Assembly (NCBI GenBank): GCA_002269645.1
Contig: NIVC01001898.1
Location: 1-64,000 of the forward strand
DNA from: Macrostomum lignano
Taxonomy: Eukaryota
Direction: 5' to 3'
Length of the DNA stretch: 64,000 bases
The translations under genes and the position numbers were made by a program. Every line of letters starts with the position of its first letter. The first letter of the stretch is position 1. This document shows positions 11,801 through 62,258 of this stretch, piece by piece. Below the pieces are notes generated by a model. It saw nothing but the letters and a program-made list of their open reading frames with translations, had not been told where the DNA came from and ran no database searches.

Positions 11801-14800
11801 GCCGCGCTCTCCCAGATCGCATATCTTGGCCGCGCTCTCCCAGATCCCATATCTTGGCCGCTCTCCCAGATCCCATATCTTGGCCGCTCTCTCCCAGATC
11901 CCATATCTTGGCCGCTATCTCCCAGATCCTCAGTTGCTAAGTCGCCTTCCCAGATGCTCAGGTTCACCCCACCACACCTGAGCAGGTCATCGACGTGGCC
12001 GAGACGGCCCTGTCAGCCGTGGAGTTGCTGTCCCGTCGCCACGGCCGCGCTGTACTCCTAGCCGGCGGAGTGTCCGCCTGCCTCCGCCATGTTGACTTCT
12101 TCACCGCCGACATGCAGGCCCGCGCCCTGTCTGTGGCGGCCAACTGCCTTCAGCACGCCAGGCCCACTGACTACCACCTGGTCAGCGACTGCGTCCCACT
12201 GCTCACCGACCGCCTGCGAGTGCCCGACCAGCGCGTCGCCGAGCTGGCCGCCGCCTGCCTTGGCCGCCTCCTAGACAGCTGCCAGTCCGACCGGCGCCTT
12301 CTGGCTCGCCTGGCCTGCCGCTCCGACCTGCTGGCCAGCCTGCAGCAGCTGCTTCTGCTCACCTGCGGCGGCGCCAATAGCGGCGCTTTCGTCGCTGCCG
12401 CCGGCGCCCTCCGCGCCGCCTGCTCCGGCTGCCCGGAGGTGGCCGTCAGACTGCTGAGAGACGGCGGCCTGGCGGAGAGCCTGCACCACCTCATGGCCAG
12501 CAGCGTCGGCTTCGCTACCGGCGGTGTCGGCGGCTCAGCCGCAGCCGCCGCTGCCGCTGCCAACGGTCTTGAAGTTGTTCGCCTAGTCTGCGAGCTACTG
12601 CCGCCGGCTCCGAGCTGCCCGCTGGATCTCTGGTGGCAGCCGCAGCAGCAGCCGCCGCAGTCGCCGCCGCCGCCGCCGCCGCCGCCTGCTCATTCTTCAT
12701 CCTCGGCGGTGTCGCTGTCGACTTCAACGGTTGCTTCGGGCACGACTGTGCAGTGGCAGTGGCGTGACGACAGCGGAGCCTGGGTGGCTTACGCGCCAGA
12801 CGCTAATCGGGCCATCGAGCTGGCCTACAGAGCCGGCGGCAGCGGCCATTCCGAGGTGGCCATCACCGCCGCCGGCCGGCCGTATCTCATCGATTTGGTA
12901 CGGGGCGAACAGGTTAGTGGCGGCTTGTTTAGTGTAGGGGTGATCTTCTATCAGCAGTAAATCCTTTTTGGGGACTTTCCATCAGTCACCTGTATTCCTT
13001 ATTGGGGATTTCCCATCAGTCACCTGTATTCCTTATTGGGGATTTCCCATTAATGCCTTTTTAGGGGATTTCCCATCAATTACTTCGGGTGTGTCAAAAG
13101 TTATGTCACTGATGTGAAAACAGACGAACTTGCAATCGCAGATGAACAAAACTGTACCACTCAACAATATAGAGTCCCCCAATATCAATCACTCTCTGGC
13201 AGTGCTCATACAGCTTGTCCACCTCAGCCTGCAGGTGTTTTTCCTCCAACTGCCATAACCAGTGCAACGCGGCCTGTTTGACCTCTTCATGATTTGCGAA
13301 ACTCTTCTTGGAAAAGTCAGCCTTTAGCCATTTGAACAGGAATCTCTTGCAAAAGTTGAAGTCCGGGCTGTAGGGACTCTGTCAGAGCAGATTCACTCGC
13401 CGTGCAGGTAAAAAATCCGAAACAGGCTTACAGGTGTGCGACCGTGCGGTGTCCACCTGCCACAGAACCTCGTCCAGGAGACATGGATTTGACCGAAGAG
13501 TGCGCCAAAGGACCCCAGTGTGCCGGGCAAAAGCGGATAAAAACTACTGACAATCGAACTTGACGTTTGACCCTCGATGAGACATCTTTGTTTGGCGTAA
13601 AGGCCACCAGCAGCATGGTCTTCTTGTCCGAGACGGACCTGGTGGTCACGGTCGGCAGCAGACCCCAGCTCCCAGCCAGCAGCGATTGTCTGCCTTGCTG
13701 CCCTTGCCATCCAGGTGGAGCCAGCTTTCATCCTCAGCAACCAGGCAGTTTAGGATGTCATTCAAGCCCCGGCTGCTGAACACCTTGCGGATCTGCTTGG
13801 TGCAGGCGTCTTGTCGAGATTCATGGTTATTTTTGTTCGCTGCATAGACGAGTTTTCATCGCGTTGCACTTGCTAAATCTGCTTGGCGTATTCTTGCGAT
13901 AGCTTGGGCCATAAACAACCTATGCACGTCTCAAATGCACTGCTATTGCTTCACTAAGTATACTTTGCAGCTACACTACCCACAAGTCCATGTGCCTACA
14001 TATTTTAGACAGAGGCCTGCAGTGACATCACTTATGACACACCCGAAGTACTTGCCTACGGGTATATTCAATTAGTATTTTCTGGGAATTTTCAATCAGT
14101 ATTTTCAATACCCCAAAAGAAACCGCTTGTTGCGCAATCGCCACGCAGGTAAACGAAGACACCGGCAGTACGCGACCAATCCAACGCCGCCTAGTAGCTG
14201 ATCAGCAGCAGCAGCCGCTGGCCCGTCAGTCGAGCTCATCTGGCGCATCATCAGCCGCTGCCGCCGCCGCGATCGACGCCCGCGCCGAACTGCTAGCCAA
14301 CGGCGGCGATTTGGCGGCCAGGCTGGTGAACTCGCTGCTCAACCCGCTGCTGGATGCCCTGGCCGACTCGCCCAGCCAGCAGCTGCGGCTGGCCTGCCTG
14401 CAGGCCCTCATCCGCCTGGTTGCCGCCAGCCATCCCGGACTGCTGCGTCCGACTCTGTCCGGCTTGCTGCCCGGGCCCGCCTGCACGCTGGCCGCCCTGC
14501 TGGCTGGCCGAGATATCCGGCTAGCGGCCGGGGCCGTCCAGCTGGCCGACCGGCTGTTGCAGCTGTCGTCGCTGCTGCCCGGCCTGCGAGTCTGCCTGCG
14601 TCGTCACGGCGTCGCCCACGGCCTGGAGAAAATCGCCAACGGGGAGCATCCGATTTTCCAGCTCACTCAGGCTGTACAGCAGCCGACGCCGGCGCCTCCG
14701 CCAGCCGAGCTGCAGGAGCCTCAGCAGCGAAGGCGCCGCCGATGCCAGCCGCCTCCGCCGCCACCGCCGCCTCAGCCGCAATCGTTGCTTCCTCCGCTGC

Positions 14801-17800
14801 CCGTTGCGCCGTCGTCAACTGGAGCCTCCGAGCAGCTGCGCATCGCTGTTCGCGACGAGGCGGCCCGCCTGCTCCGTCGGTATCGCCTGCTGGAGACGGG
14901 CGGCGGCGACTCTGCCGCTGTTGCCTCTTCGCCATCCGGTTGCGCCAGCTTTGAGAACGACGCCGCCGCTGCCGCCGCCGCCGCCGCTGCTCGACTGGCG
15001 CAGCTGGCCCGCCGCCTGCCCGACGGCATGTCTGAGCTGGCCAGCCTCATCGCGGGCGCCGGCCACCCGCAGCCCAGCAGCCAGCAGCCGCAGCGTCTGC
15101 AACGCCGCCGACACCGTTCAGGAGCTTCAACCGTCGCAGCCACGTCAGCGACCTCCTCAGACTTGAGCTGCGCCGACCTGAGCCCGTTCGAGCTGCTCAA
15201 CTGCGGCCTGTTGCCCCGCCTGCTCCGCTGCCTGTTGGCCCAGCCCGAACATCAGCGCCAGCATCTTCGCCCGCTGCGCGACCTTCTAGTCGCATTCGGC
15301 GCTCATCAACGCCGCCCGCCTGCCGCATTCCGCGCCCTCATCTGCCGCCTGCTGGCCTGTCTGCACCAGTCTGCGGACCTGTTCCCAGTGCGGGACACGG
15401 CCTCGCTAGGCTTGCTGGCTGGCAGGCAGCTGCGGTGCCGTCTGGTCCGGCATCAGCAGAACTCCGGCTCAGCTGGCGGAGCCTCCGCCGTCGCGTCCGC
15501 CGGCCCTGTGCGCGTAGACCCGCTGGCGCTTGTGCGCACCGTCGAGCGCTATCTGTCTGAGCGGCTGGCCGACTTTCAAGACGACGACGACGAAGATGAA
15601 GACGACGACGACGATGATGATGAAGATGTCGGCGCTGACGACGATGTCGAATTGGATGCTGACGACCGCGGCGACGAGGACGAGGAACTCGATGAGGAAA
15701 ACGATTTCGACGATGAATTCGACGACGAAGACGACTGCGAAGAGGCTGTCGAAGACGATGACGACGAAGAGCTGCCTGATGAGGATGGAAGCGCCGACAC
15801 TTCCGCCGCCGGGGCCGCAGCTTCCGCTAGCGGCACCAATCGCAGTCGCGGCGTGGCGCCGCCGTCCAGCCATCGAATGGGCTCGGCCGGCTCGTCCTCC
15901 GGCGCTGCGGCGATCGGCAGCAGCAGCGGCGGCAGCCGACGCGGCAGCGGAAACTACGGCGGCCTGGACAGTTTCGACGACGATGACGTCGACGAAGAAT
16001 ACGACGATGACGTTGGCGGCGGCGGCGGCGAGCAGGACGATGAAGAGGCCGACGGCGATCCCGGCAGGCGGCGACGGTCCCGACCCCGGCTGGAGCTGCT
16101 CATCGGGGACTCGGTGCTGCCATCGGGCATGTCGATGCTGCAGGCGGTGCGCGTGTACTCGCTCGGCGTCGGCGCCGGCAGTTCCGATAGCAACGACTTT
16201 GTTGGCGTCTCTGCAGCCGATTTGGACGCCGACGTTGAGCAGGACGGTGTGAGTGCTCTGTGGAGCCGGACTCACGCTATCTACTACCGCTATAGGCAGG
16301 CTGCTGCGGCCGCAACTCCGGCAGCGGCCGCAACAGCGACGACATCGAGCTCGACGGCCGCCGTCATCGTTAGTTCCAGTCGGCAGCGTCGCGGAAGCCA
16401 GCGAGCCCTGTCGTCTTCATCATCGGTAATGTCTTCGCAGCAGCAGCAGCAGGCGCAGTCGCCGGGCTGGTGGCAGCGCTGTCAGGAGCTGCTGGGTCAC
16501 CTGGACCCGGTGCCCGAGCCCTGCCGCTCCGTGCTGGGTCTGCTGTCTGTGCTGCACGCGGCCAACAGTCACTACGCGGATCTGTTCGATGCCAGCGAGG
16601 CCGATTCACAGCTGGCCGTGTCGGTCGATACCTTCGAGTCCGGGGGGCCGCTGCTTCATCCGGACGAGTTCGTCAGCGCCAAGCTGACGGCTAAGGTTAG
16701 CTGTTTAATGATTTTTAATGGGGATACGACTTTGATTTTGACATGCCGACATTGATTTTGACATGCCGACTTTGATTTTGACATGCCGACTTTGATTTTG
16801 ACATGCCGACTTTGATTTTGACATGCCGACTTTGATTTTGACATGCCGACTTTGATTTTGACATATCGACATTGATTTTGACATGCTGACTTTGATTTTG
16901 ACATGCCGACTTTGATTTTGACATGCCGACTTTGATTTTGACAGGCTGACTTTGATTTTGACATGCCGACAAATCAATCTTCGATTTCATCCCAATCCGC
17001 AGGTGATCCGCCAGGTGCGCGATCCGCTGTCCCTGCTGACCGGCCACACCCCCGCCTGGATTGGCCGCCTGGCCGCCTCCTGTCCGCAACTGCTCTCGTT
17101 CGAGGCCCGCCACCTGCTGCTCTACGTGCTCAACTTTGATCGAGATCGGGCGCTCGCTCGCCTGCACGAAGTCAACGGAGCCGCCGCCGCCGCTGCCGCC
17201 GCCTCGGCCGCCGCCGCCAACTCCGACCAGGCTTCGTCTGCCGCCGCCAACGCCGCTGCCGCCGCCGCCGCAGCCGCCGCAGTCAGCGCTGTGGCTTCGC
17301 CGTCCTCGTCTTCAACCAGTCGGCACCAGCACCATCATCATCAGCGACAGCAGCATCACCAGCAGCATCAGCAGCAGCAGAGCCGATGGCTTACGCCCCG
17401 GCTGGAGAAGCGCCGGCGCACAGTTAATAGACGCGATCTGCTGGCCTCGGCCGAGCGACTTCTCCGAAGCCGTCGCCGGCCCGCAGCCGGTGGAGGTCGT
17501 GTCGCCGGAGGCGGAGTCCAGCCGCTGCTGGAGGTGAGCTACGAAGGCGAGGTCGGCACCGGCCTGGGCCCCACCCTGGAGTTCTACTCACTGGTTAGCC
17601 GGGAATTCGCCCGGCAAGATCTGGGCATGTGGCGTCAGCGTCAGGACGAACAACGGGAGCTGCTGTACCCCCGGCCGACTCCGCAGTCTTCTGCTGCGGT
17701 CAATCGTCGGCTGATTCGCAGATTCCACAGTCTGGGCAGATTCATGGGCAAAGCTTTGGCCGACTCGCGCAAGCTGGACCTGCCGCTGTCGCCCGCTTTC

Positions 17801-20800
17801 TACTATTGGCTGCTCGGTAGGGAGGCCGAGCTGGCCGCTGGCGGGTACAGGATGCTGGCTTTGGTGAGCCTCTTGCTGCTTTCATTCGATTGCCTCTCGT
17901 GACCACACTTAACTTCTCACGCTCATATATGACTTGCGATGAATTCTAATGGCTTTTCATGACGCTTTATGTCATGACCTCAAATGGCTTTTCATGACGC
18001 TTTATGTCATGACCTCAAATGGCTTTTCATGACGCTTGATATCATGACATCAAATGACTTTTCATGTTTTTATGACCTTTATTGAGCTTTTAACAATAAC
18101 TTAGTTAACCCATTTGATCTTTAATACACCTGTTTTGCCAGGTGGACCCGGTGCTCGCGCGCACCTGGCGCCAGCTAGTGCAGGTGGCGGACAGGCGGCG
18201 CCAGATCCTCGGCGACCAGTCGCACACGCCGGCCACTCGCGACCTGGCGCTGAACGCCCTGACGGCCGAGCTGGGCTGCCCAGTGGAGGAGCTCGGCCTG
18301 GACTTCACCCTGCCCGGCTACCCCGCCGTCGAGCTGCTGCCCGGTGGCTCCGGCATCCCCGTCACCATCGACCGGCTTGACGACTACCTGACCCTGGCCG
18401 CCAGGTGGACTCTCAGCGACGGCGTCCGGCGCCAGATGCGCGCCTACCTGTCCGGCTTTGAGTCCGCTTTCCCGGCGTCCGGCGCGGCCTGGCCATGTTC
18501 CGGCCGGACGAGCTCGAACTGGTCTTTTGCGGCGCCGCTGTTGACCGAGACGACTCCGCCTGGGAGGTCGGCGCTCTGGCCGAGGCCTGCCGGCCCGACC
18601 ACGGCTACACGCTGGAGAGCCGGGCGGTGCGCATGCTGTTCCGGGTCATGTCCGAGTTCGGGCCCGCCGAGCGGCGCGGCTTCCTGCAGTTCGTCACCGG
18701 CTCGCCGCGGCTACCCGTTGGAGGTGCGACTGCCTGCAGAATTGCTTTTGGCCTAGGTCACGGCCTTCCAGATCCTCAGTTGCTGGGTCACGGCCTTCCA
18801 GATCCTCAGTTGCTGGGTCACCGCCTTCCAGATCCTCAGTTGCTGGGTCACCGCCTTCCAGATCCTCAGTTGCTGGGCCACCGCCTTCCAGATCCTCAGT
18901 TGCTGGGTCACCGCCTTCCAGATCCTCAGTTGCTGGGTCACCGCCTTCCAGATCCTCAGTTGCTGGGCCACCGCCTTCCAGATCCTCAGTTGCTGGGTCA
19001 CCGCCTTCCAGATCCTCAGTTGCTGGGTCACCGCCTTCCAGATCCTCAGTTGCTGGGTCACCGCCTTCCAGATCCTCAGTTGCTGGGTCACCGCCTTCCA
19101 GATCCTCAGTTGCTGGGTCACCGCCTTCTAGATCCTCAGTTGCTGGGTCACCGCCTTCCAGATCCTCAGTTGCTGGGTCACCGCCTTCCAGATCCTCAGT
19201 TGCTGGGTCACCGCCTTCCAGATCCTCAGTTGCTGGGTCACCGCCTTCCAGATCCTCAGTTGCTGGGCCAGCCTTCCAGATCCTCAGTTGCTGGGCCAGT
19301 CTTCCAGATCCTCAGTTGCTGGGTCACCGCCTTCCAGATCCTCAGTTGCTGGGTCACCGCCTCCCAGATCCTCAGTTGCTGGGTCACCGCCTTCCAGATC
19401 CTCAGTTGCTGGGCCAGCCTCCCAGATCCTCAGTTGCTGGGCCAGCCTCCCAGATCCTCAGTTGCTGGGTCACCGCCTCCCAGATCCTCAGCTGCTGGGT
19501 CACCGCCTCCAATATCCTCAGCTGCTGGGTCACCGCCTCCAATATTCTCAGTTGCTGGGCCAGCCTCCTAGATCCTCAGTTGCTGGGTCACCGCCTCCCA
19601 GATCCCCAGTTGCTGGGTCACCGCCTCCCATATCCTCAGTTGCTGGGCCAGCCTCCCAGATCCTCAGTTGCTGGGCCAGTCTTCCAGATCCTCAGTTGCT
19701 GGGCCAGCCTTCCAGATCCTCAGTTGCTGGGTCACCGCCTTCCAGATCCTCAGTTGCTAGGTCACCGCCTTCCAGATCCTCAGTTGCTGGGTCACCGCCT
19801 TCCAGATCCTCAGTTGCTGGGTCACCGCCTTCCAGATCCTCAGTTGCTGGGTCACCGCCTTCCAGATCCTCAGTTGCTGGGTCACCGCCTCCCATATCCT
19901 CAGTTGCTGGGCCAGCCTCCCAGATCCTCAGTTGCTGGGCCAGTCTTCCAGATCCTCAGTTGCTGGGCCAGCCTTCCAGATCCTCAGTTGCTGGGCCAGT
20001 CTTCCAGATCCTCAGTTGCTGGGCCAGTCTTCCAGATCCTCAGTTGCTGGGCCAGTCTTCCAGATCCTCAGTTGCTGGGCCAGCCTTCCAGATCCTCAGT
20101 TGCTGGGCCAGTCTTCCAGATCCTCAGTTGCTGGGCCAGCCTTCCAGATCCTCAGTCGCTGGGCCAGTCTTCCAGATCCTCAGTTGCTGGGTCACCGCCT
20201 TCTAGATCCTCAGTTGCTGGGTCACCGCCTTCCAGATCCTCAGTTGCTGGGTCACCGCCTTCCAGATCCTCAGTTGCTGGGTCACCGCCTTCCAGATCCT
20301 CAGTTGCTGGGTCACCGCCTTCCAGATCCTCAGTTGCTGGGCCAGCCTCCCAGATCCTCAGTTGCTGGGCCAGCCTCCCAGATCCTCAGTTGCTGGGTCA
20401 CCGCCTTCCAGATCCTCAGCTGCTGGGTCACCGCCTCCAATATCCTCAGCTGCTGGGTCACCGCCTCCAATATTCTCAGTTGCTGGGCCAGCCTCCCAGA
20501 TCATCAGTTGCTGGGCCAGCCTCCCAGATCCTCAGTTGCTGGCCCAGCCTCCCAGATCCTCAGTTGCTGGGTCACCGCCTCCCAGATCCTCAGCTGCTGG
20601 GTCACCGCCTCCAATATCCTCAGTTGCTGGGCCAGCCTCCAATATCCTCAGTTGCTGGGCCAGCCTCCCAGATCCTCAGTTGCTGGGTCACCGCCTTCCA
20701 GATCCTCAGTTGCTGGGTCACCGCCTTCCAGATCCTCAGTTGCTGGGTCACCGCCTTCCAGATCCTCAGTTGCTGGGTCACCGCCTTCCAGATCCTCAGT

Positions 20801-32488: not shown

Positions 32489-35400
32489 TCAAGAGTTCAC
32501 ATTCCGCCGCACCCATTCGGCATAGGCGGACATCCGAGCGTAGACGCCCGGCCTTTTGGCCTGGCCGCAGCCATCGCCGTGAGACACCAGGCCGGCCACC
32601 AGCCACAGGTCCTGCCGGTTGATCATCAACGGTCCGCCTGAATCACCTGTGCAAGCGTCGCGTTCTCCTGCCTGCAGAACGTTTGTGCATTGGGTTGGAT
32701 CTGGTTAATCAGTTGATAAATGTTGGTGAATCGGGTTATAGTGCTGTTGGTGAATCGGGTTATAGTGCTGTTGGTGAATCGGGTTATAGTGCTGTTGGTG
32801 AATCGGGTTATAGTGCTGTTGGTGAATCGGGTTATAGTGCTGTTGGTGAATCGGGTTATAGTGCTGTTGGTGAATCGGGTTATAGTGCTGTTGGTGAATC
32901 GGGTTATAGTGCTGTTGGTGAATCGGGTTATAGTGCTGTTGGTGAATCGGGTTATAGTGCTGTTGGTGAATCGGGTTATAGTGCTGTTGGTGAATCGGGT
33001 TATAGTGCTGTTGGTGAATCGGGTTAATAGTGCTGTTGGTGAATCGGGTTATAGTGCTGTTGGTGAATCGGGTTATAGTGTTGTTGGTCAATCGGGTTAT
33101 AGTGCTGTTGGTGAATCGGGTTATAGTGCTGTTGGTGAATCGGGTTATAGTGCTGTTGGTGAATCGGGTTATAGTGCTGTTGGTGAATCGGGTTATAGTG
33201 CTGTTGGTGAATCGGGTTATAGTGCTGTTGGTGAATCGGGTTATAGTGCTGTTGGTGAATCGGGTTATAGTGCTGTTGGTGAATCGGGTTATAGTGCTGT
33301 TGGTGAATCGGGTTATAGTGCTGTTGGTGAATCGGGTTATAGTGTTGTTGGTGAATCGGGTTATAGTGCTGTTGGTGAATCGGGTTAATAGTGCTGTTGG
33401 TGAATCGGGTTATAGTGCTGTTGGTGAATCGGGTTATAGTGCTGTTGGTGAATCGGGTTAATAGTGCTGTTTGAGTTAGAGTGGAAGAGTTGTGCTCAGA
33501 TTTCTGAATGTTGTTTATCTAGTTATAAAAATAGCACGAATACCAAAAACCCAGCGCAGATATTCTCGGCATAAACTGGTCTGCTGGTGCCAGCATAGAG
33601 TTCTTTGCACCTGGTGTTGCTCAGCACTGGCAGTTGGGTCTCCATGAGACGGTCGGCCACGTCGCTATCTAAAATTGGTTCAGGCAGCGCTAAAGAAATC
33701 TGACCGATTCGATGGCACGCAATGGTCAGCTCAGACTCACCCTCTGTGGCTCCCCAGCCGGCTACGCTGCCAATTGAGTTGTCGAATGCTTCTCCGGGCT
33801 CTGGCAGGCAGATGGGCTCAACGGAATTTAGTAACTGGGCCGGCTTGTCCAGCTTTAACAATGCGACATCGTTGCTGTAGATGGGCTGGAAGAATCTCTC
33901 GTGCACAACCACCCGACTGACGTTGAACTCCTGCACACTGATGTCGCCTGCGGCTGTGTGGCCCAGGCGAACTGAGAATGTCTCGCTGGCGCTGTGAAGT
34001 TGTGTGAATGGCAGGTAGCTAAGGTAGGTTTTTGTCTCTCGCATCAAATTAAGTATCTGAGTGCGACTCCTGCGCGGTCACTTCAATTTAGGACTTGCTG
34101 CGTAGTTCAAATTCTCATGATGGGCCAATACTCAATGCACAGTATGCACTGCCTGACGGTGAGAAGGTCAGGACTGCATGCTGTCTGTCCGAAGCACTCC
34201 GTCATGCATCGGAAGGTTGGCTGTTTTGTAGATTAATGGAGGAAGTCCATGTAGGTACGTGTTGATTGTTTGTGTTGATTTTTCGTGTTGATTGTTCATG
34301 GTTGTGTTGATTGTTCATGTTGATTGTTTGTGTTGATTTTTCGTGTTGATTGTTCGTGGTTTGTGTTGATTGTTCGTGTTGATTTTTTGTGTTGATTTTT
34401 TGTGTTGATTGGTTCGTGGTTGTGTTGATTGGTTCGTGGTTGTGTTGATTGGTTCGTGTTGATTGTTTGTGTTGATTTTTCGTGTTGATTGTTCATGGTT
34501 GTGTTGATTGTTCATGTTGATTGTTTGTGTTGATTTTTCGTGTTGATTGTTCATGGTTGTGTTGATTGTTCGTGTTGATTGGTTCGTGGTTTGTGTTGAT
34601 TTTTCGTGTTGATTGTTTGTGTTGATTGGTTCGCGGTTTGTGTTGATTGTTCATGGTTGTGTTGATTGTTCATGTTGATTGTTTGTGTTGATTTTTCGTG
34701 TTGATTGTTCATGGTTGTGTTGATTGTTCGTGTTGATTGGTTCGTGGTTTGTGTTGATTTTTCGTGTTGATTGTTTGTGTTGATTGGTTCGCGGTTTGTG
34801 TTGATTGTTCGTGTTGATTGTTTGTGTTGATTGGTTCGTGGTTGTGTTGATTGTTCGTGTTGATTGTTTGTGTTGATTGGTTCGTGGTGATTAGCATCGG
34901 TTGATTGTTTGTTTGCTAAACAGTAAACTGTAGGTTTATTGGGGAGGTAGGTGGTAGCTAGATAGACACGCAAGAGACAATCTAGACTCACTCGGCCCAA
35001 GCGAAGCAGTGCCCAGCGGACAGAACCCATTGAGGATGCACCAGCACACCGCCGCAGTGCTGACGCGGCGTCGCATCCTTCGCAGTCTTCGCGGACAGAT
35101 CGCGGCTCACGAGAATTTGTGCCAACCAGGGCCAATCCCCGGCAACGGCGAGGTGGCCACCGATCACCAGACTGACGTCGGCGGCACCGGTGCTGCTCCT
35201 GTTTCCGCAGGGCACGATAGGGTGACGCTCGATGTGCTGCTCCGGTCGCTTCGGAGGCACGCAGCAGTGATAGCCAGCCGGGCAGTGCAGCCACGAAAAC
35301 CAGGCGTTCTCGAATGGACAACCGTCGCTGCCTGTTTTTACGCACACTCCGGCAAACACCTTCCAGCATGTCGAGTTGGACGTTCCTGTGGGAATTGAAA

Positions 35401-43979: not shown

Positions 43980-45331
43980 ATGATGGTTTACGGACATCAG
44001 TCTGGTGCAACTGATGGAGCTTATTTTGGTCAAAAGTGAGTTCAAATCGTGTTATTTATTATTGCAGTAGGTCTTTCATTTTTTTAATTAAACATATTTC
44101 CGATTTCGGGTTCTGACGTTGGAAATTTAAAATTCTATCACAGGGAAAGGGGTTCTAGTTCTACCTAGCCTAGAAGGTACAGTGTTCGATTTTTAGTTAT
44201 CTTTGGCAATTGGCATCTGTTTTAGCCTTTTAGCATGGCATTCCCTCTTAGCAGTCGAACACAGAAGAATGTTTCTGTTAAAGGCTCATGGGGGTCAACA
44301 CCCAATTACGTAATAAGTCAAATCAAACTAAGTAGACACTGGTGACGATTTTTTAATTTCTTCCGTGCCATTTTGGAAACGGAAAATAGTATAGCCGTTA
44401 AGGCGTATAGCGAAGCGACACAAAATAGAAAAATTCCCGCTAAATTCCTAGAAAACTTTACTTGTAGTAGAACAAAAAATAACGTTGTAAAAAGTAGGTA
44501 CGGCCTGTGTAAATATATTGTTTTCGCAAAAAATTAGAAATGTACTTATGATTTCCTCTGACTAAATAAGATTTACAACCAGCTTTTAAACGCCACCACA
44601 TGCACGGGGGTTTAGCGGCCCAGACTATAGTGGGCGTCAGACGCTTGTTTTTATTGGGGGGTCGAGGCGGCGGGCCATTAGACAAATGGTCAGCTTTTCT
44701 TACCCATACATAAATTATATTATATTACACCCCTCCTTAAAACACAGCCCCAGACAGCCCCGAAAAATAGGGAGCAAGTGTACTTTTAAAATGCTTGCAC
44801 TTTTACAGGCGGGGGTTATTTTCAAGTTAAATCATGTCTTTTTATTGGCCTCTAGTAGGGATTGCAAAATCCCGGTCTTCTGTCAATCCCGGGATTGTCA
44901 GGATCGGGATATCTCGGCCATGGATAATCCCGGGATTATCAGTCCCGGTAAATCCGACAAATTTTAATCCAGGGATTCAAATCCCGGAATTTGGCCCCTA
45001 ATCCCGCGATCCCAGGATCCCGGGATTGCAAACCCTAGCCTCTAGGCTCCTCCGCGAAAACCCATGCAATAAATACAGTGACGTACAATCTGCACTCTGC
45101 ACTGTAGTCTCTGTACTGTACCTTGATCTCAAATATGATCTCAAATATTGATCTGAAATTTAAAAATGAACGTGTGCACGCTCACCCCTTAACAGGCCGC
45201 TGGTCCACGATCCGCGCGGCTACCTCGCCTCGGCTCGACGCTTGCCAGATGAAGGGCCTATGTCGCAGCCTCCGCCGCTGTTGCAGCAGCAGCCGCAACT
45301 GCCTCAGCTGATGCCAACTCCGCAGCTGCTT

Positions 45332-45381
<50 letters not shown>

Positions 45382-45898
45382 GCAACAGCTGCTTCCACCG
45401 CCATTGCTGAAGTTTCAAGGCGTCTGCGATGATCCCAGTTGCAGCAACAGCTGCGATGGCAACGAGTGCGGCGAGGACTGCGAAATGACGTCAGACGACA
45501 CCAGCTGCTGCGGTGTCGGGTGCAGCGCCGCCGGCGCCGACAGCGGGAACTCCGAAGGCAGCAACGACGTCGGCCGTGGCGGCGACAGCGGATTTCTGTA
45601 CAGCCTGCTGACAGCACAGGACGCCACCGCCGTGCAGCAGTGCAGCGCCTTCCTCGGCGGCACAGCGGACCAGTTCCCGCGCCGCTCCCAGTCGGTCTCC
45701 GCGCCGGCCAGACGCGGCAGCGCCGTGCTGCCCTCCGCCACTCTGCAGCCGTTCGCTACCGCCCTGGGCTGCCAGCCGCCTAGCAGCACGGCGGCACCCT
45801 GCCGGCCGCTGTCGGCTCCGCGCGGCCTTCGGGGCCCGTTCGGCGGCGGCTCCGCGCCAGCGCTCACTGGCGCCGAGGAGCCTCTCGACCTCAGCGGC

Positions 45899-45938
<40 letters not shown>

Positions 45939-48900
45939 TTCGCCCGGAGTCGATTATCGAGCAGCAACTGATGCTCAAGCAGCAGCAAGAGCTAGAGCTT
46001 CAGCGTCAGCATCAGCACCAGCTGCAGCAGTTGCAGCGTCTTCAGCAGCTCCAGCTCCAACAGCAACAGCAACAGCAGCAGCAGCAACAGCCCTTGCTGA
46101 GGAACATGCTGCTCTACAGCCAGATGCCGCAGCTGTCGCCGCAGCAGCCTCTGCCGCCGGAGCAGCAGGAGCAGCCGGTGCGCCTTGCCAAAAAGACCAT
46201 CCTGGTTGCCCAGTCGCACGTGGCCGACTGGCTGAAGAAGGGCGCCGAGCTGGTGCGCACAAACGGCGCCCTATTCGGCGCACTGGACAAAGCCGGACGA
46301 GCGGATCTGCTCAGCCGGGCCTGGCCCCGGATCCTGCAGCTGTACATGCTGGAGCACAACTTCCAGTTCGCCGTGTCGCCGGCCGCGACCTCCGCGTCCC
46401 AGGAGTCCGGCGAGGTGGCCACCACGGCCAAGTGGCAGCCGACGAAGTCTTTTGCGGACGATCTTCAGCGGCTGATCGCGGCGGCTTCTAATCTGCCCTT
46501 TGACACGGTGACCTACAACCTGCTGCGGCTGGCGGCCATCTTCATGCGTGAGTGCCGGAGCTGTTCTCTGCTCTTTTACTTTTAACTGGCTGACCCAGGG
46601 CCTACTTTAAAAGTCTACCAAAGATGTCTACCCTAGAGTCTACTAAAGATTTCTACCCTAGAGTCTACTAAAGATGTCTACCCTAGAGTCTACCCGAAGA
46701 TGTCTACCCTAGAGTCTGCCCAAAGATATCTACCCTAGAGTCTACCCAAGATGTCTACCCTAGAGTCTTTCAAAAATGTCTACCCTAGAGTCTTCCAAAG
46801 ATGTCTACCAAAGATGTCTACCAAAGATGTCTACCCTAGAGTCTACCCTAGAGTCTAGTAACATGTCTGTTTCTTCTACCAGCGTACTTCCAAAACCAGT
46901 CTCTCTCGAATACTAGAATCAGAAATGCAATTTGCCTCAGTTGTAAGCAGCCTGACAAGAAAATAAGCAAAACTTTTATTGTACAGGAAAGAATAACAAT
47001 AGCAAAAGGGTAGCGCCGTCCCTCCCAAATGCCATTGTGCAACTTCAGCAAGCTGCAGCACCAGCTTTGCTTAAACAAGTGCTTAAACTAATTCTGGGGG
47101 TCGGTGCTTTGAGACTTTTGTTGTCTCGAAGCAGTTTTTGAGCATAACAACTTGTAATATCTGTTTTCGAGAATGCAGCAAAGAATCTTTCATGTACTGT
47201 ACTCTATTTTTATTATTAGATTTTGAAAAATAGCCGTCAATATGTTTTTTTATTTTCTGCAGAGTTTCTATTTTTAGCACCGTGCACTCATCTGAGTCCC
47301 GACTGATACAAAACAGCTCGAAATTATTTCAGCCTAAGGGGCTTCGAAGGCTAATCAATAAGTGGAGAGTGGTTTGGTGGACCCTCAGGTTTGGTTCGGG
47401 AATTTAGATCTTGGAATATTGAATCGGAACTTTGGATTGAGTTCAGGATTAAAGAATCGGGACTCAAGAATCGGAGCTCAAGAATCGGGACTCAAGCATC
47501 GGGATTCAAAAAATCAGGACTCAAGAATCGGGACTCGAGAATCGGAGCTCAAGAATCGGGGCTCAAGAATCGGGACTAAAAAAATCAGGACTCAAGAATC
47601 GGGACTAAAAAAATCAGGACTCAAGAATCGGGACTAAAAAAATCAGGACTCAAGAATCGGGACTCGAGAATCGGAGCTCAAGAATCGGGACTCAAGATTC
47701 GGGACTCAAAAATCGCAGCTCAAGAATCGGGACTCAAGAATCGGGGCTTAATAATCGGGACTCAAGAATCAGGACTCAAGAATCGGGACTCGAGAATCGG
47801 AGCTCAAGAATCGGGACTCAAGAATCGGGACTCAAGAATCGGGACTCAAAAATCGGAGCTCAAGAATCGGGACTCAAGAATCGGGGCTTAAGAATCGGAG
47901 CTCAAGAATCGGGACTCAAAAATCAGGACTCAAGAATCGGAGCTCAAGAATCGGGACTCAAGAATCGGGACTCAAGAATCGGGGATCAAGAATCGGGACT
48001 CAAGAATCGGGACTAAAAAATCAGGACTCAAGAATCGGGACTAAAAAATCAGGACTCAAGAATCGGGACTCGAGAATCGGAGCTCAAGAATCGGGACTCA
48101 AGAATCGGGACTCAAGAATCGGGACTCGAGAATCGGAGCTCAAGAATCGGGACTCAAGAATCGGGACTCAAGAATCGGGACTCAAGAATCGGGACTCAAA
48201 AATCGGAGCTCAAGAATCGGGACTCAAGAATCGGGGCTTAAGAATCGGAGCTCAAGAATCGGGACTCAAAAATCAGGACTCAAGAATCGGAGCTCAAGAA
48301 TCGGGACTCAAGAATCGGGACTCAAGAATCGGGGATCAAGAATCGGGACTCAAGAATCGGGACTAAAAAATCAGGACTCAAGAATCGGGACTAAAAAATC
48401 AGGACTCAAGAATCGGGACTCGAGAATCGGAGCTCAAGAATCGGGACTCAAGAATCGGGACTCAAGAATCGGGACTCGAGAATCGGAGCTCAAGAATCGG
48501 GACTCAAGAATCGGGACTCAAGAATCGGGACTTAAAAATCGGGACTTGAAGCTGTATTAAGATTCGGGAAGAAAGACTGTAATTCAGTATTCAGATACTC
48601 TCCATTCTTACACACGTTGGCTAGCTTTGAATTAAGTAATACTCGTAAGGTAAACAGAGCTACCATGCATGCACTCGAACACGATACGGTATTATTCGGC
48701 CTAGTTCTAAGTTAGAAAACGGCCGAGAAGATAAGATCGCTATTAAGAATGTATAGTTAGGACTAAGAAGAGAATGCTTCGAAAATCAGATTATCAGTTA
48801 TAGTTAGACTAAGTTACCCAGCTCTATATTTTAACATCATGAACGAAAAGGTTTATAAGTTATACGGTTAGTATCAATATGCATTTTGCCTCGGTTGCAT

Positions 48901-49846
48901 TGCGAGGGCCGGCGCACACTCAGGCATTCACCTACAGTGCGTACTTGGGCGCCTGAGCCTGAGAGTGCCATGGAATTTTGCCTACCTGCCCTGCACCTCT
49001 GATGAGTCATCGCTGCGACCCAGTGCAGGGGGGGTAAAAAGAGGTCATTATTTAGCTTGCAAGCGCGGGGCCTGTTTGACCTGCGTGTGAACTTTGCTTG
49101 AACTTTTCCACCAACTCTGCATGCAGAAATGAGGGGAGAGAGGGAGAGAAAGCAGTGCTGGGTTCGTTCGTGCTTGCTTCTGCCGAACTGCCTCCACTCT
49201 CTACTGTACGTGTGGCCCTGTCTTGCATCACCCGGTGCACTCGTGGGCTGGCTCTGGGTCGAAAGCTTGTCACCTACTGACAGAGCAAGTGCTTTTCACT
49301 CTTATAAACAATTTGTGCAACTAATGGTTTGACACAGGTGACAGGGCTTGCTTGCTGGGAATGCAAGTACGAAAAATCGTATTGCTAATAGTTTATCATT
49401 TAATAGAGTGCCAGTATGGGGCACAGATGCTCAGACATCAGGGAGGTGCCAGTTGGGGCACAGATGCTCAGACATCAGGGAGGTGCCAGTTGGGGCACAG
49501 ATGCTCAGACATCAGGGAGGTGCCAGTTGGGGCACAGATGCTCAGACATCCAGGGGCCATAGACACTGCAGTAGATTAGCAATCCATCAATTAAAAGTAC
49601 ACAATGACACCCTATATTGCAGCCGACCAGTCTCAGCCGGACGCCCCGGCCCTGGCCGAGGTGCAGTCAGAGATCATGAAGCACATCTACCATCACCTCG
49701 GGGTCAAGGGCCTAGCGCAGCACTTCAAAGAAGCCGAAGCAATCCTGGAGGCTGTGTCGCAGACTGACAAAGCTCGCCTAGAGATCCTGTTCTGCAGTCA
49801 CCTCAGCTCAACAGTTGACGAGTACATCAGAGTCCAGCTAGGCTAA
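43980..49846 (+). CDS. atypical nuclear receptor, ligand-binding domain only (NR0B/DAX1/SHP-like). join(43980..44035,45196..46547,49623..49846), 543 aa
   Basis: Phase-consistent GT-AG introns (CAAAA|GTGAGT to aacag|G; ATGC|GTGAGT to ttgcag|CC). NR LBD signature FxxLxxxxxxxLLxxxW (LFGALDKAGRADLLSRAW), YNLLRLAAIFMP-D (resembling EYAYLKGTVLFNPD), and a C-terminal LEILFCSHLSSTVDEYIRVQLG*. No C4 zinc fingers anywhere in the model. N-terminal GFLYSLLT resembles the DAX1 LxxLL boxes. Exon 1 is less certain than exons 2-3. Confidence 0.85.
44856..45037. mobile_element. 182-bp hAT-type MITE in intron 1 of the nuclear receptor gene
   Basis: TIRs TAGGGATTGCAA / TTGCAAACCCTA (11/12), perfect 8-bp TSD GCCTCTAG (44848-44855, 45038-45045), and many internal ATCCCGGGAT-type palindromic motifs. 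Confidence 0.9.
46610..46860. repeat. about 25-bp minisatellite (aagatgtctaccctagagtctac)
   Basis: About 10 imperfect copies starting about 60 bp after the donor of NR intron 2. Confidence 0.9.
47450..48545. repeat. 14-bp minisatellite (aagaatcgggactc) with a duplicated block of about 350 bp
   Basis: About 78 units; the variant pattern from about 47860 repeats from about 48210. Confidence 0.95.
49410..49552. repeat. 37-bp repeat x3.5 (ggggcacagatgctcagacatcagggaggtgccagtt)
   Basis: Starts at 49418, 49455 and 49492. Confidence 0.92.
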
Positions 49847-52669: not shown

Positions 52670-53965
52670 GGTCTATCCACTGAGACTCGGGCTTATCCAC
52701 TGAGACTCGGGCTTATCCACTGACACTCTGGTCTATCAACTGACACTCTGCTGGTCTATCAACTGACACTCTGGTCTATCCACTGACACTCTGGTCTATC
52801 AACTGACACTCTGGTCTATCAACTGACACTCTGGTCTATCAACTGGCAACTCGGCTCCTCTCTCGGTCCCGAACCGCTTGTCCCGATTCCTGGCTGTGTC
52901 ATCGACTCGCGCATCAAAGCGTGGATCAGGACCCAGCACCGCTCGGCTTGGGCGAACTGCACTACCTGCAGGCAATCCAGAGGCGCTGTCCCTCAGCCCA
53001 GCTCTGGAAGCTCCTCTTGCGCCTCTCGCGCAGAGACATCCGGGCTGCCACCATGACCCTCTCAGGTCACGGCTGCTTCTCTAGGCACCAGTACCTGCAG
53101 GGCAACGCCACCAACAGTTTCTGCAACTCAGGTGACGAAACCGTTGAGCATTTCGTCAGCATCTGTCCCGCCTTAAGTGAGCCAGAGTCACTTACCTCGG
53201 GCCACACACATCTATTACTGAAGCGTGCAAACCCGAAAACTTTAATCAGCTCATGCGCTACCTCCGGGCCACCCGCAGGGCTGAACTCTCCTTTCCAAGG
53301 AGCACTATAGCTGCTGGCGACACTGGGGGACCTCCCTGGGCGGCGCCAACCTTTCGTCCATAGCGACGCGTCGGCCGTTTAGGGATTAGCGGAATGGGCG
53401 TTCGCGTCTTCCCGCTGTGTCCCCTCCGGGACAGCCCTGCAGCTAAGTCAAGTAAGTCAAGACACTCGGGTCTATCCACTGACACTCTGGTCTATCCACT
53501 GACACTCGGGTCTATCCACTGACACTCTGGTCTATCCACTGACACTCGGGTCTATCCACTGACACTCGGGTCTATCCACTGACACTCGGGTCTATCCACT
53601 GACACTCGGGTCTATCCACTGACACTCGGGTCTATCCACTGACACTCGGGTCTATCCACTGACACTCTGGTCTAACCACTGACACTCTGGTCTATCCACT
53701 GACACTCTGGTCTATCCACTGACACTCTGGTCTATCCACTGACACTCGGGTCTATCCACTGACAGTCGGGTCTATCCACTGACACTCGGGTCTATCCACT
53801 GACACTCGGGTCTATTCACTGACACTCTGGTCTATCCACTGACACTCGGGTCTATCCACTGACAGTCGGGTCTAACCACTGAGACTCGGGTCTATCCACT
53901 GAGACTCGGGTCTATCCACTGACACTCTGGTCTATCAACTGACACTCGGGGTAACCACTGACACT
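52670..53965. repeat. 20-bp minisatellite (ctatccactgacactcgggt), interrupted by a LINE fragment
   Basis: Arrays at about 52670-52845 and 53462-53965. Confidence 0.95.
52846..53461 (+). mobile_element. 5'-truncated non-LTR retrotransposon 3' end (R1/LOA/I-type)
   Basis: Frameshifted remnant AWIRTQHRSAWANCTTCRQSR / KLLLRLSRRDIRAATMTLSGHGCFSRHQYLQG...CNSGDETVEHFVSICPAL (post-RNase H region plus CCHC knuckle), then a 3' UTR ending in an AAGTC-repeat tail (CTAAGTCAAGTAAGTCAAG). Confidence 0.8.
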
Positions 53966-57525: not shown

Positions 57526-58214
57526 CGATTCTGTGGATTACTTGGAATAGCCGGCCTAGCTACATGCATACGGGTATACGGGCTTCGTGCTGCCTCTTGC
57601 CCCTCTGAATTTGAGTATCAAAATTACATCCCATGTCGTACCATATAGCCGCTATACACTGCAGGTCATGCCACACGTTTTGCAACGCGTCGATCTTGCT
57701 AAAAGTGTACAATTCAATGTCAATTTTTATTTAGCCTACTACAGGTGCGGACAAGTATAACAAACTTCTGACGTATTTACTGCTAGATCTCACAGACCTA
57801 TACTAGCTGCAGTCGAATCAGCTGCTATAGTTCTGTAAATTTCGACAGTGATAAGCTGGCTCTGTGTGCGATCTCTGATTCTGTGAACTCGCGACTCTTA
57901 ACAGTTTTTAAGTGCTCACTACTCATGCCGCTAAGGACTTATCGCTATAGTAGCCAGCCGATGCACTTTACAGGCCATAGCACGAATGACAGCGGTCCCT
58001 GAGAATTGCCCGCAGTGCTTAGTACAAGCGTGTCTTCCTAAATTACGGGTCGTTTTACAAGACCCCCTTTCTTTCGGGGGTCGGCTGACCCCTTGACCCT
58101 CAGGGATCCACCACTGGTTGCGTGTCTAACTCGTACTCCCATTAATTACTTGTATTTGCAGACCCCCGCCACTTAGAACATGTTGGATCCGCTTGTTTGT
58201 ATCTGTGTAGACAG

Positions 58215-61200
58215 GTAACGACAGGAGTGAACAGACACGAGAGAGTGAGGAGTGAAAAGACACGAGAGAGTGAGGAGTGAAAAGACACGAGAGAGTGAGG
58301 AGTGAAAAGACACGAGAGAGTGAAGAGTGAAAAGACACGAAAGAGTGAGGAGTGAACACGAGAGAGGAGTGATGAGACACAAGAGAGGAGTGATGAGACA
58401 CAAGAGAGGAGTGATGAGACACGAGAGAGGAGTGATGAGACACAAGAGAGGAGTGATGAGACACAAGAGAGGAGTGATGAGACACAAGAGAGGAGTGATG
58501 AGACACAAGAGAGGAGTGATGAGACACAAGAGAGGAGTGATGAGACACAAGAGAGGAGTGATGAGACACAAGAGAGGAGTGATGAGACACAAGAGAGGAG
58601 TGATGAGACACAAGAGAGGAGTGATGAGACAAGGAGAGAAGTGATCGGAGACACGAGAGAGGAGTGGTGAGACACAAGAGAGGAGTGATGAGACAAGGAG
58701 AGAAGTGATCGGAGACACGAGAGAGGAGTGGTGAGACACAAGAGAGGAGTGATGAGACACGAGAGAGGAGTGATGAGACACAAGAGAGGAGTGATGAGAC
58801 ACGAGAGAGAAGTGATGAGACACGAGAGAGAAGTAATGAGACACGAGAGAGGTGTGATGAGACATGAGAGAGGAGTGATGAGACACGAGAGAGGAGTGAT
58901 GAGACACGAGAGAGGAGTGATGAGACACGAGAGAGAAGTGATCGGAGACACGAGAAAGGAGTGATGAAACACGAGAGAGGAGTGATGAGACACAAGAGAG
59001 GAGTGATGAGACACGAGAGAGGAGTGATGAGACACAAGAGAGGAGTGATGAGACACGAGAGAGGAGTGATGAGACACGAGAGAGGAGTGATGAGACACGA
59101 GAGAGGAGTGATGAGACACGAGAGAGGAGTGATGAGACACAAGAGAGGAGTGATGAGACACGAGAGAGGAGTGATGAGACACGAGAGAGGAGTGATGAGA
59201 CACGAGAGAGGAGTGATGAGACACAAGAGAGGAGTGATGAGACACGAGAGAGAAGTGGTGAGACACAAGAGAGGAGTGATGAGACATAAGAGAGGAGTGA
59301 TGAGACACAAGAGAGGAGTGATGAGACACGAGAGAGGAGTGGTGAGACACAAGAGAGGAGTGATGAGACACGAGAGAGGAGTGGTGAGACACAAGAGAGG
59401 AGTGATGAGACACGAGAGAGGAGTGATGAGACACAAGAGAGGAGTGATGAGACACGAGAGAGGAGTGATGAGACACGAGAGAGGAGTGATGAGACACGAG
59501 AGAGGAGTGATGAGACACGAGAGAGGAGTGATGAGACACAAGAGAGGAGTGATGAGACAAGGAGAGAAGTGATCGGAGACACGAGAGAGGAGTGGTGAGA
59601 CACAAGAGAGGAGTGATGAGACAAGGAGAGAAGTGATCGGAGACACGAGAGAGGAGTGGTGAGACACAAGAGAGGAGTGATGAGACACAAGAGAGGAGTG
59701 ATGAGACACAAGAGAGGAGTGATGAGACACGAGAGAGAAGTGGTGAGACACAAGAGAGGAGTGATGAGACACGAGAGAGGAGTGATGAGACACAAGAGAG
59801 GAGTGATGAGACACGAGAGAGAAGTGATGAGACACGAGAGAGAAGTGATGAGACACGAGAGAGGTGTGATGAGACATGAGAGAGAAGTGATGAGACACAA
59901 GAGAGGAGTGATGAGACACGAGAGAGGAGTGATGAGACACGAGAGAGGAGTGATGAGACATAAGAGAGGAGTGATGAGACACGAGAGAGGAGTGATGAGA
60001 CACGAGAGAGAAGTAATGAGACATAAGAGAGGAGTGATGAGACACGAGAGAGGAGTGGTGAAACGCGAGAGAGAAGTGATCGGAGACACGAGAGAGGAGT
60101 GGTGAAACAAGGAGAGAAGTGATCGGAGACACGAGAGAGGAGTGGTGAAACAAGGAGAGAAGTGATCGGAGACACGAGAGAGGAGTGACGAGACGAGAGA
60201 AAAGTGATGAGACACGACGGTGGGTGAGGACTCCTCAGTCTTACGAAGGTCTGCTTGAGAGGAGGCAGAAGATGAGATGGAGAGTAGACAAGAGCGAGAA
60301 TGGCATTAAAGCACAATGTGCTCAACACTACAGAGAAAATCGAGCAAAATTCACTGGTGGCCATGGACTCAGAGAGAACCTACTGCGAGCGAGAGCTGGA
60401 AAACAAGCTTAAAGTGCAAAAGAGAAGCAAGTAGAGCAAAAAATAAATTAGATGGTTGCAATTGCACAGCAAATATGACAGTAGATACGAGTCGGAAAGC
60501 TTAAGGTGATGAGACAAGGTGATGAGATGAGACACAAGAGAGGAGTGATGAGACACGAGAGAGGAGTGATGAGACACGAGAGAGGAGTGATGAGACACGA
60601 GAGAGGAGTGATGAGACACGAGAGAGAAGTGATCGGAGACACGAGAAAGGAGTGATGAAACACGAGAGAGGAGTGATGAGACACAAGAGAGGAGTGATGA
60701 GACACGAGAGAGGAGTGATGAGACACGAGAGAGGAGTGATGAGACACGAGAGAGGAGTGATGAGACACGAGAGAGGAGTGATGAGACACGAGAGAGGAGT
60801 GATGAGACACGAGAGAGGAGTGATGAGACACGAGAGAGGAGTGATGAGACACAAGAGAGGAGTGATGAGACACGAGAGAGGAGTGATGAGACACAAGAGA
60901 GGAGTGATGAGACACGAGAGAGGAGTGATGAGACACGAGAGAGGAGTGATGAGACACGAGAGAGGAGTGATGAGACACAAGAGAGGAGTGATGAGACACG
61001 AGAGAGAAGTGGTGAGACACAAGAGAGGAGTGATGAGACATAAGAGAGGAGTGATGAGACACAAGAGAGGAGTGATGAGACACGAGAGAGGAGTGGTGAG
61101 ACACAAGAGAGGAGTGATGAGACACGAGAGAGGAGTGGTGAGACACAAGAGAGGAGTGATGAGACACGAGAGAGGAGTGATGAGACACAAGAGAGGAGTG

Positions 61201-62258
61201 ATGAGACACGAGAGAGGAGTGATGAGACACGAGAGAGGAGTGATGAGACACGAGAGAGGAGTGATGAGACACGAGAGAGGAGTGATGAGACACAAGAGAG
61301 GAGTGATGAGACAAGGAGAGAAGTGATCGGAGACACGAGAGAGGAGTGGTGAGACACAAGAGAGGAGTGATGAGACAAGGAGAGAAGTGATCGGAGACAC
61401 GAGAGAGGAGTGGTGAGACACAAGAGAGGAGTGATGAGACACAAGAGAGGAGTGATGAGACACAAGAGAGGAGTGATGAGACACGAGAGAGAAGTGGTGA
61501 GACACAAGAGAGGAGTGATGAGACACGAGAGAGGAGTGATGAGACACAAGAGAGGAGTGATGAGACACGAGAGAGAAGTGATGAGACACGAGAGAGAAGT
61601 GATGAGACACGAGAGAGGTGTGATGAGACATGAGAGAGAAGTGATGAGACACAAGAGAGGAGTGATGAGACACGAGAGAGGAGTGATGAGACACGAGAGA
61701 GGAGTGATGAGACATAAGAGAGGAGTGATGAGACACGAGAGAGGAGTGATGAGACACGAGAGAGAAGTAATGAGACATAAGAGAGGAGTGATGAGACACG
61801 AGAGAGGAGTGGTGAAACGCGAGAGAGAAGTGATCGGAGACACGAGAGAGGAGTGGTGAAACAAGGAGAGAAGTGATCGGAGACACGAGAGAGGAGTGGT
61901 GAAACAAGGAGAGAAGTGATCGGAGACACGAGAGAGGAGTGACGAGACGAGAGAAAAGTGATGAGACACGACGGTGGGTGAGGACTCCTCAGTCTTACGA
62001 AGGTCTGCTTGAGAGGAGGCAGAAGATGAGATGGAGAGTAGACAAGAGCGAGAATGGCATTAAAGCACAATGTGCTCAACACTACAGAGAAAATCGAGCA
62101 AAATTCACTGGTGGCCATGGACTCAGAGAGAACCTACTGCGAGCGAGAGCTGGAAAACAAGCTTAAAGTGCAAAAGAGAAGCAAGTAGAGCAAAAAATAA
62201 ATTAGATGGTTGCAATTGCACAGCAAATATGACAGTAGATACGAGTCGGAAAGCTTAA
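58215..62258. repeat. 21-bp minisatellite (gagaggagtgatgagacacga/caa) containing a tandem duplication of about 1.7 kb that includes a unique segment of about 300 bp
   Basis: The unique segment at about 60205-60504 recurs at about 61959-62258 (offset 1754). Confidence 0.95.

Follow-up and report, generated by a model that had tools for sequence, protein, structure and literature searches.

The analysed window, a 64,000-nucleotide (nt) stretch of the flatworm Macrostomum lignano (GenBank assembly GCA_002269645.1, contig NIVC01001898.1, positions 1 to 64,000; all positions below are those of this window), carries on its forward (+) strand a three-exon gene coding for a nuclear receptor relative of 543 amino acids (aa) without a DNA-binding domain (DBD). 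Considered as a whole, the evidence makes it fairly probable that this intact gene represents, in a flatworm and in fast-evolving form, a spiralian NR0B-type (DAX1/SHP-like) family, whose product would act as a corepressor without binding DNA itself.

Exon 1 (43980..44035) holds the start codon and comprises 18 codons and two bases (MMVYGHQSGATDGAYFGQ, then a split Lys codon), and intron 1 (44036..45195, GT...AG, donor GT at 44036) was the only splice that closed the frame. Exon 2 (45196..46547), a continuous open frame, encodes the N-terminal regulatory region and the helices of the ligand-binding domain (LBD) to about H7. Intron 2 (46548..49622) interrupts the LBD in phase 1 at ..IFM/P.., and exon 3 (49623..49846) encodes the C-terminal part of the LBD (about H8-H12) and the stop codon, with helix 12 (VDEYIRVQLG) at 49814-49843. 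Joined in frame, the three exons gave an open reading frame (ORF) of 543 aa plus stop, i.e., 1632 nt, with GT...AG borders at both introns, and the model proposed by a first-pass annotation of the sequence was reproduced exactly. The exon 2/3 junction (..AAIFM/PDQSQ..) was contained in the public protein A0A1I8F4F9 (P0001), identical at 100% to the C-terminal part of the model, and was also crossed without interruption by a related transcript (L002). Intron 2 was largely filled with tandem repeats, namely a 25-nt unit repeated 9 times (46612-46848), a 14-nt unit (AAGAATCGGGACTC) repeated 78 times (47452-48546) and, just before the acceptor site, a third array with a 37-nt unit repeated 3.9 times (49408-49555).

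The related transcript, a paralogue or orthologue of the window gene, was available as Logan assemblies (L002 and L003) of SRR30276804 and SRR30276812, and displayed an unbroken, intron-less ORF of 473 aa, which is a complete coding sequence with in-frame stops upstream of the start MMVYGH. The coding part of exon 1 matched the start of this coding sequence (MMVYGH..DGA[YF]F) apart from an in-frame indel of 3 nt and some substitutions, several of them silent and at third positions, while the DNA upstream aligned worse, and islands conserved with L002 were found along the entire exon 2. Comparison with the related transcript thus argues for exon 1 as modelled. The public gene model (A0A1I8F4F9, named 'NR LBD domain-containing protein' in UniRef) is truncated at the N-terminus, where it starts mid-exon, and mis-spliced. 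About 480 nt of exon 2 (45833-46313), coding according to the related transcript, are spliced out in it. Through these two faults the public protein has lost the initial helices of the LBD as well as PLDLS and the two Leu-rich boxes; the model presented here corrects it. A first word-indexed homologue search with the window protein returned only this public model.

The best-conserved N-terminal block, GGDSGFLYSLLTAQDATAVQQCSAF (aa 147-171, 45578..45652), was also the best-conserved DNA of the gene, with 88% nucleotide identity to L002 versus about 70% in the LBD. It contains FLYSLL (aa 152-157, 45593-45610), a putative receptor-interaction box of the LYxxL type resembling SILYNILK of vertebrate NR0B1, so that the N-terminal LxxLL-related box expected of an NR0B receptor falls where the protein is conserved best. 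Downstream, two RRxS motifs (FPRRSQS...RRGSAVL, aa 179-197, 45674..45730) were conserved with L002 and may be phosphorylation sites for a kinase or for 14-3-3 binding, as judged from their sequence; a similar PRRxNS occurred in some relatives of the window protein. They are followed by PLDLS (aa 248-252, 45881..45895), a candidate CtBP-binding motif of the PxDLS type, the classical CtBP-binding motif, which stands in an EEPLDLS context conserved in L002. A second Leu-rich box, PLLRNMLLYS (aa 318-327, 46091..46120), lies just ahead of the LBD and aligned with SLLRNLLxVGK of the relatives. A Cys-rich stretch (aa 96-128, 45425..45523) was no C4 zinc finger and showed no conservation in the paralogue; like the glutamine tracts, it is specific to the window copy.

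The receptor gene is intact and under purifying selection: against L002, the ratio of nonsynonymous to synonymous substitution rates (dN/dS) was 0.25 for the LBD and 0.24 for the surroundings of the first box. Another M. lignano copy (L001) was found in reversed orientation at a contig end (NIVC01000302.1 682523-694579; PAA85886.1, Mlig025668g2), with an intron at the same LBD position as intron 2 of the window gene. The reading frame of this copy switches inside exon 2, leaving the deposited protein partly out of frame, probably through an assembly indel.

The first part of the LBD (aa 346-469 plus the first base of codon 470, 46175..46547), including the signature region FGALDKAGRADLLSRAWPRILQLYMLE, was delimited by profile matches. 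A HMMER search of 1.84 billion representative proteins with the 198-aa C-terminal domain returned 94 matches at E<=1e-3; three were Macrostomum sequences or close relatives thereof (E 1e-102 to 7e-47), and the best remaining, non-macrostomid relative had an E-value of 2.7e-15. Among ten relatives scanned, eight passed the Pfam receptor LBD family PF00104 (E 1e-14 to 1e-20, 52-72 bits), one stayed under the threshold and P0002, a close relative, failed as the window protein did. The family profile in turn matched solved receptor LBDs at E 1e-25 to 1e-27. DAX-1 ranked first among solved structures with the full-length family profile (1.3e-27), while a second search with an LBD-only profile placed COUP-TFII first (91.5 bits) and DAX-1 second (87.7 bits). 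The AlphaFold model of aa 393-543 consisted of helices, with a predicted local distance difference test (pLDDT) value of 59 and of 65-85 in the core, and receptor LBDs made up 49 of its 50 top Foldseek matches. A structure model of the 124-aa exon-2 part alone was poor (pLDDT 45) and was not used.

Several direct comparisons weigh against this assignment. No match to PF00104 was obtained at E<=10 by Pfam hmmscan, either with the 543-aa protein or with its C-terminal 226 aa, and a phmmer search of the PDB with the window protein returned no receptor. An hhalign comparison of the window LBD with nine solved LBDs was weak and not significant (probability 3.6%, P = 0.012), with the LBD signature in the correct register. 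Every Foldseek E-value was >=0.2, and both structure models were of low confidence. The missing PF00104 match is best read as a failure of sensitivity, because the domain matches 94 relatives whose profile finds solved LBDs. On this transitive evidence through relatives, the C-terminus is accepted as a receptor LBD, if a very divergent one. The LBD called recognisable in the first-pass annotation is therefore real by way of its relatives, eight of the ten scanned passing PF00104, and is invisible to a direct search of Pfam or PDB; the lack of a PF00104 match, which that annotation had named as refuting its reading, did occur, and reflects the divergence of the domain.

Helix 12 had been described as lacking the usual glutamate of activation function 2 (AF-2), and the alignment bears this out. 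Glu at this position was found in relatives (LLKEML), DAX-1 (MLEML) and RXR (LMEML), and is replaced by Val in the window protein (YIRVQL) and by Ala in the related transcript L002. It was also missing in the Macrostomum-clustering environmental or transcriptome contigs whose C-termini were inspected. The helix-3 lysine of the charge clamp is Arg in the window protein.

The two C4 fingers and the P-box of canonical receptors (NR1-NR6) are lacking in the 543-aa protein, and were also searched for in the surrounding DNA. A regular-expression search of the entire 64 kb, in all six frames, for both C4 fingers plus the P-box returned nothing real, and searches with six receptor DBD probes over both strands of the 64 kb reached at most 21.6 bits with tblastn and 9.5 bits with a hidden Markov model (HMM). 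The best tblastn alignments to the probes included stop codons, and a genuine DBD would be expected to score far above these values given the conservation of this domain. The observation that no frame encodes C4 zinc fingers, originally made from the putative promoter to the stop codon, accordingly extends to both strands of the whole window. Upstream, the receptor gene is followed most closely by a gene for a trypsin-like serine protease, 8.6 kb away, of which two exons were seen on the other strand (33526-34047 and 34991-35359, -). Further upstream, domain matches identified a WWE domain and two HECT parts in forward-strand ORFs (11995-12957 and 16952-18753, +), which together resemble a gene for a TRIP12-like E3 ubiquitin ligase extending across about 10.7-19 kb. 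With the protease gene (33.5-35.4 kb) and the WWE/HECT gene (about 12-19 kb) in the upstream DNA, a hidden upstream exon would have little space.

The relatives of the window protein formed a spiralian family without DBD. No C4 finger was detected in any of the 94, among them RefSeq models from Lineus, Tubulanus and Lingula. Named members comprised molluscs (Elysia, Sinanodonta, Macoploma, Bradybaena, Acanthosepion (Sepia), Haliotis, Lottia and Batillaria), annelids (Owenia and Capitella), nemerteans (Lineus and Tubulanus) and a brachiopod (Lingula). Databases label them in conflicting ways (COUP-TF2-like, NR2C1-A, 'steroidogenic factor 1' or uncharacterized), and a search with a spiralian-only profile likewise returned few named proteins with inconsistent names. 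The family layout opens with a single or double LxxLL-related box at the N-terminus, followed in order by PxDLS, an SLLRNLL-type box, ..LAKK.. and the LBD with the pattern ..W.R(I/L)L.LYM.E.NFQFAV... All these elements are carried by the window protein: FLYSLL (aa 152-157), PLDLS (248-252), LLRNMLL (319-325) and the ..LAKK../LBD pattern from aa 349. Of 93 relatives, 61 carried PxDLS, against 2% of shuffled sequences; the motif is not mentioned in the main text of the Platynereis nr0b paper (PMC13012086). Many truncated relatives ended at ..LFNxG, which suggests, at the level of sequence, that they share the same LBD intron site.

A neighbour-joining tree was built on 199 columns; the LBD sequences of ERalpha and PPARgamma used in it agreed at 100% with the PDB. 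The family was monophyletic in 98-100% of bootstrap replicates, the two Macrostomum sequences grouped together at 100%, and the environmental or transcriptome contigs P0052, P0066 and P0067 clustered with them at 92-95%. These three contigs, together with P0070, P0074 and P0094, were Asn-rich and AT-rich relatives. The M. lignano gene almost certainly belongs to this spiralian family. Its layout being common to molluscs, annelids, nemerteans and a brachiopod, any loss of the DBD predates flatworms, and the independent loss in the flatworm lineage that the first-pass annotation had offered as one option is not supported.

Orthology of the gene to vertebrate DAX1/SHP was judged likely, with somewhat less confidence than its membership of the family. 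The evidence that favours NR0B lies outside the LBD, in the similarity of N-terminal motifs. When an HMM was made from the N-terminus of vertebrate NR0B1 (C.CC...SILYNILK), the spiralian N-termini scored well above shuffled controls, with matches extending to the Cys pair and the spacer (e.g., YCCPTSRHQPKILFSLLKAE against CRCCTDKRRQSSILYNILKSQE), and the Macrostomum box GFLY[SN]LLT conforms to the same pattern. When mouse DAX-1 was added to the query profile, candidates were swamped by vertebrate NR0B1, so that this search gave reference sequences and was no test of relationship. Several results pull the other way. The family joined vertebrate NR0B in 37% of neighbour-joining bootstraps when ERalpha and PPARgamma were included and in 66-68% when they were not, these two having formed no clean outgroup. 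Distances were near saturation and equal to DAX1, COUP and PNR (1.88-1.89), exclusively shared residues did not discriminate (6 with NR0B versus 5 with PPARgamma), and PxDLS was missing from all 119 vertebrate NR0B1 proteins. The family found here is probably the one published as invertebrate NR0B. The claim of an NR0B orthologue therefore stands as regards a DBD-less protein with a DAX1/SHP-like layout, and is likely as regards orthology, for which the LBD tree gave 37-68% support.

Three other explanations of the locus were weighed. One is a canonical receptor with a zinc-finger exon beyond the window or otherwise undetected upstream; in its favour, exon 1 is short and was placed by comparing it with a paralogue or orthologue. 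The lack of any DBD-like sequence on either strand of the 64 kb, the protease gene 8.6 kb upstream, the in-frame stops before the start of the related transcript and the DBD-less state of 94 of 94 relatives all speak against it and leave it hardly credible. The locus could also be non-functional, either a decaying duplicate or an open frame made by CAG-rich repeats that mimics a receptor: more than one frame holds long ORFs owing to glutamine runs and GC-rich sequence, Pfam does not recognise the divergent LBD, and many genes of M. lignano are duplicated (PMC8363021). Neither form agrees with a frame intact over three exons with canonical splice sites, a dN/dS of about 0.25 and short motifs far better conserved than their surroundings, and non-functionality appears very unlikely.

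A more serious contender, still rated as improbable, is convergence, by which the spiralian family would derive from an NR2-type receptor (COUP-TF, TR2/4 or PNR-like) through a DBD loss of its own, and would resemble DAX1/SHP only because LBD-only repressors need LxxLL-type boxes. The rank of COUP-TFII above DAX-1 with the LBD-only profile, the equal distances to DAX1, COUP and PNR together with the modest bootstrap values for a grouping with NR0B, the lack of PxDLS in vertebrate NR0B1 and the NCBI member names COUP-TF2-like or NR2C1-A would all be expected under it. On the other side, DAX-1 was the top solved match of the full-length family profile, the likeness at the N-terminus extends beyond a bare LxxLL into the Cys-Cys spacer and the ILYxxLK context, 0% of bootstrap replicates placed the family with TR4 or COUP, and published phylogenies name the mollusc and annelid genes NR0B (PMC4070562, PMC4388693, PMC13012086). 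A bolder version would make the family an independent, ancient LBD-only repressor recruiting CtBP through its conserved PxDLS rather than a DAX1/SHP orthologue, flatworms having further lost the AF-2 clamp and the Pfam-detectable signature and duplicated the gene; this too is doubtful, and if true, 'NR0B' would be a convergent grade and not a clade.

Under the preferred assignment to an NR0B-type family, the protein is most likely a non-DNA-binding corepressor, by analogy with known systems. In DAX-1 and SHP, receptor-interaction boxes dock on DNA-bound partner receptors and block them. The flatworm protein would likewise not bind DNA itself, and its FLYSLL box, perhaps also LLRNMLL, would fit into the coactivator groove of partners bound to DNA, for instance receptors of the NR5A/FTZ-F1, ERR or HNF4 types. 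Repression would then proceed by occlusion of coactivators and by recruitment of CtBP through PLDLS, with its own LBD serving as a surface for dimerisation and repression. Because the helix-12 glutamate is lost and the clamp broken, the protein is unlikely to recruit coactivators itself. Partners, repression and CtBP binding are attributed to the flatworm member by analogy with DAX-1/SHP and RIP140/LCoR.

DAX1/SHP-type receptors were long regarded as vertebrate inventions, and the first-pass annotation still described them as best characterised in vertebrates. To frame them as essentially vertebrate would overstate the novelty of the locus, since NR0B has been published for oyster (CgNR0B, PMC4070562), DAX genes for snails (BgDAX and LgDAX, PMC4388693) and nr0b1/2 for Platynereis, with a bilaterian tree and mutants showing reproductive and growth phenotypes (PMC13012086). 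Nomenclature files LBD-only receptors as NR0B whatever their phylogeny (PMC4070562). As for flatworms, Schistosoma mansoni was listed without NR0B in the three-way comparison of the Biomphalaria/Lottia paper (PMC4388693). The survey of Wu & LoVerde built its trees on the DBD and had no NR0A/B entry for any flatworm in its table, in agreement with the earlier expectation that DBD-based surveys would miss such a gene; of the two M. lignano 'NR0' genes of Cheng et al., it moved one to subfamily 6 and ascribed an atypical P-box to the other (PMC8363021). A keyword search of the literature, which was no strict test, brought up no report of a flatworm NR0B among its top results.

Receptor censuses by Pfam or by DBD both miss this gene, which is a practical warning for future surveys. 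The locus shows that the early-branching flatworm M. lignano, at least, keeps the gene, and does so in two copies. As M. lignano is a transgenic model amenable to RNA interference, a role in gonad development, growth or regeneration is directly testable. At the family level, the conservation of PxDLS in spiralians and the loss of the AF-2 Glu in the Macrostomum cluster are two points of possible interest to specialists.

Elsewhere in the window, very long tandem arrays at 9.3-10.6, 18.7-21.4, 22-23, 35.3-36.9 and 58.1-62.1 kb produced repetitive ORFs in several frames. The last of these regions contains two near-identical blocks of about 2 kb (58126-60364 and 60380-62118), and strong GC and AT skews coincided with the long arrays. 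Two ORF fragments (365-751, +, and 52921-53310, +) resembled by eye the RNase H-like and C-terminal parts of ORF2 of non-LTR (long terminal repeat) retrotransposons (..ILTDSQAAIRAIQ.., ..GDETVEHFVSICPAL..).

Among known systems, the corepressors RIP140 (NRIP1) and LCoR use LxxLL-type boxes on the AF-2 surfaces of receptors together with PxDLS motifs recruiting CtBP. The combination of box and PxDLS is what the window protein has in common with them, as sequence motifs only on its side; in sequence and fold these proteins are unrelated to it, and they have no LBD. Nuclear receptors without DBD are reportedly also present in the ctenophore Mnemiopsis (PMC3038971), another case of LBD-only receptors outside vertebrates; these belong to another lineage and were not among the 94 matches.

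The likeness to DAX-1 and SHP is closer, with an LBD but no C4 DBD, an N-terminal [IF]LYxxL box and an LBD that aligned end to end. The Trp of 'WAK' is not conserved, being Phe in DAX-1, SHP and most relatives and Leu in the window protein. The phase-1 intron within the LBD may also correspond to that of DAX-1, whose core has two coding exons with such an intron at ..LFNP/D... In contrast to DAX-1, the window family lacks the repeats of 65-70 aa, and Pfam NR_Repeat was unmatched in the ten relatives scanned. The window protein further differs from DAX-1/SHP by the loss of the AF-2 Glu that is kept there, by a PxDLS that is found in none of the 119 NR0B1 proteins, by its long glutamine tracts and by an LBD of low identity, with distances near saturation.

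The spiralian NR0B/DAX-like genes (CgNR0B, BgDAX, LgDAX and Platynereis nr0b1/2) are the nearest counterparts, being proteins of like kind from the animal superclade to which flatworms also belong. Compared with these spiralian relatives, the Macrostomum sequences showed about 25-29% LBD identity, the window protein and P0002 gave no PF00104 match, the LLKEML AF-2 motif is absent and the gene is duplicated in M. lignano. What is new at this locus is a flatworm member of a DAX1/SHP-like family for which molluscs and annelids had already furnished examples, and not a new kind of gene.

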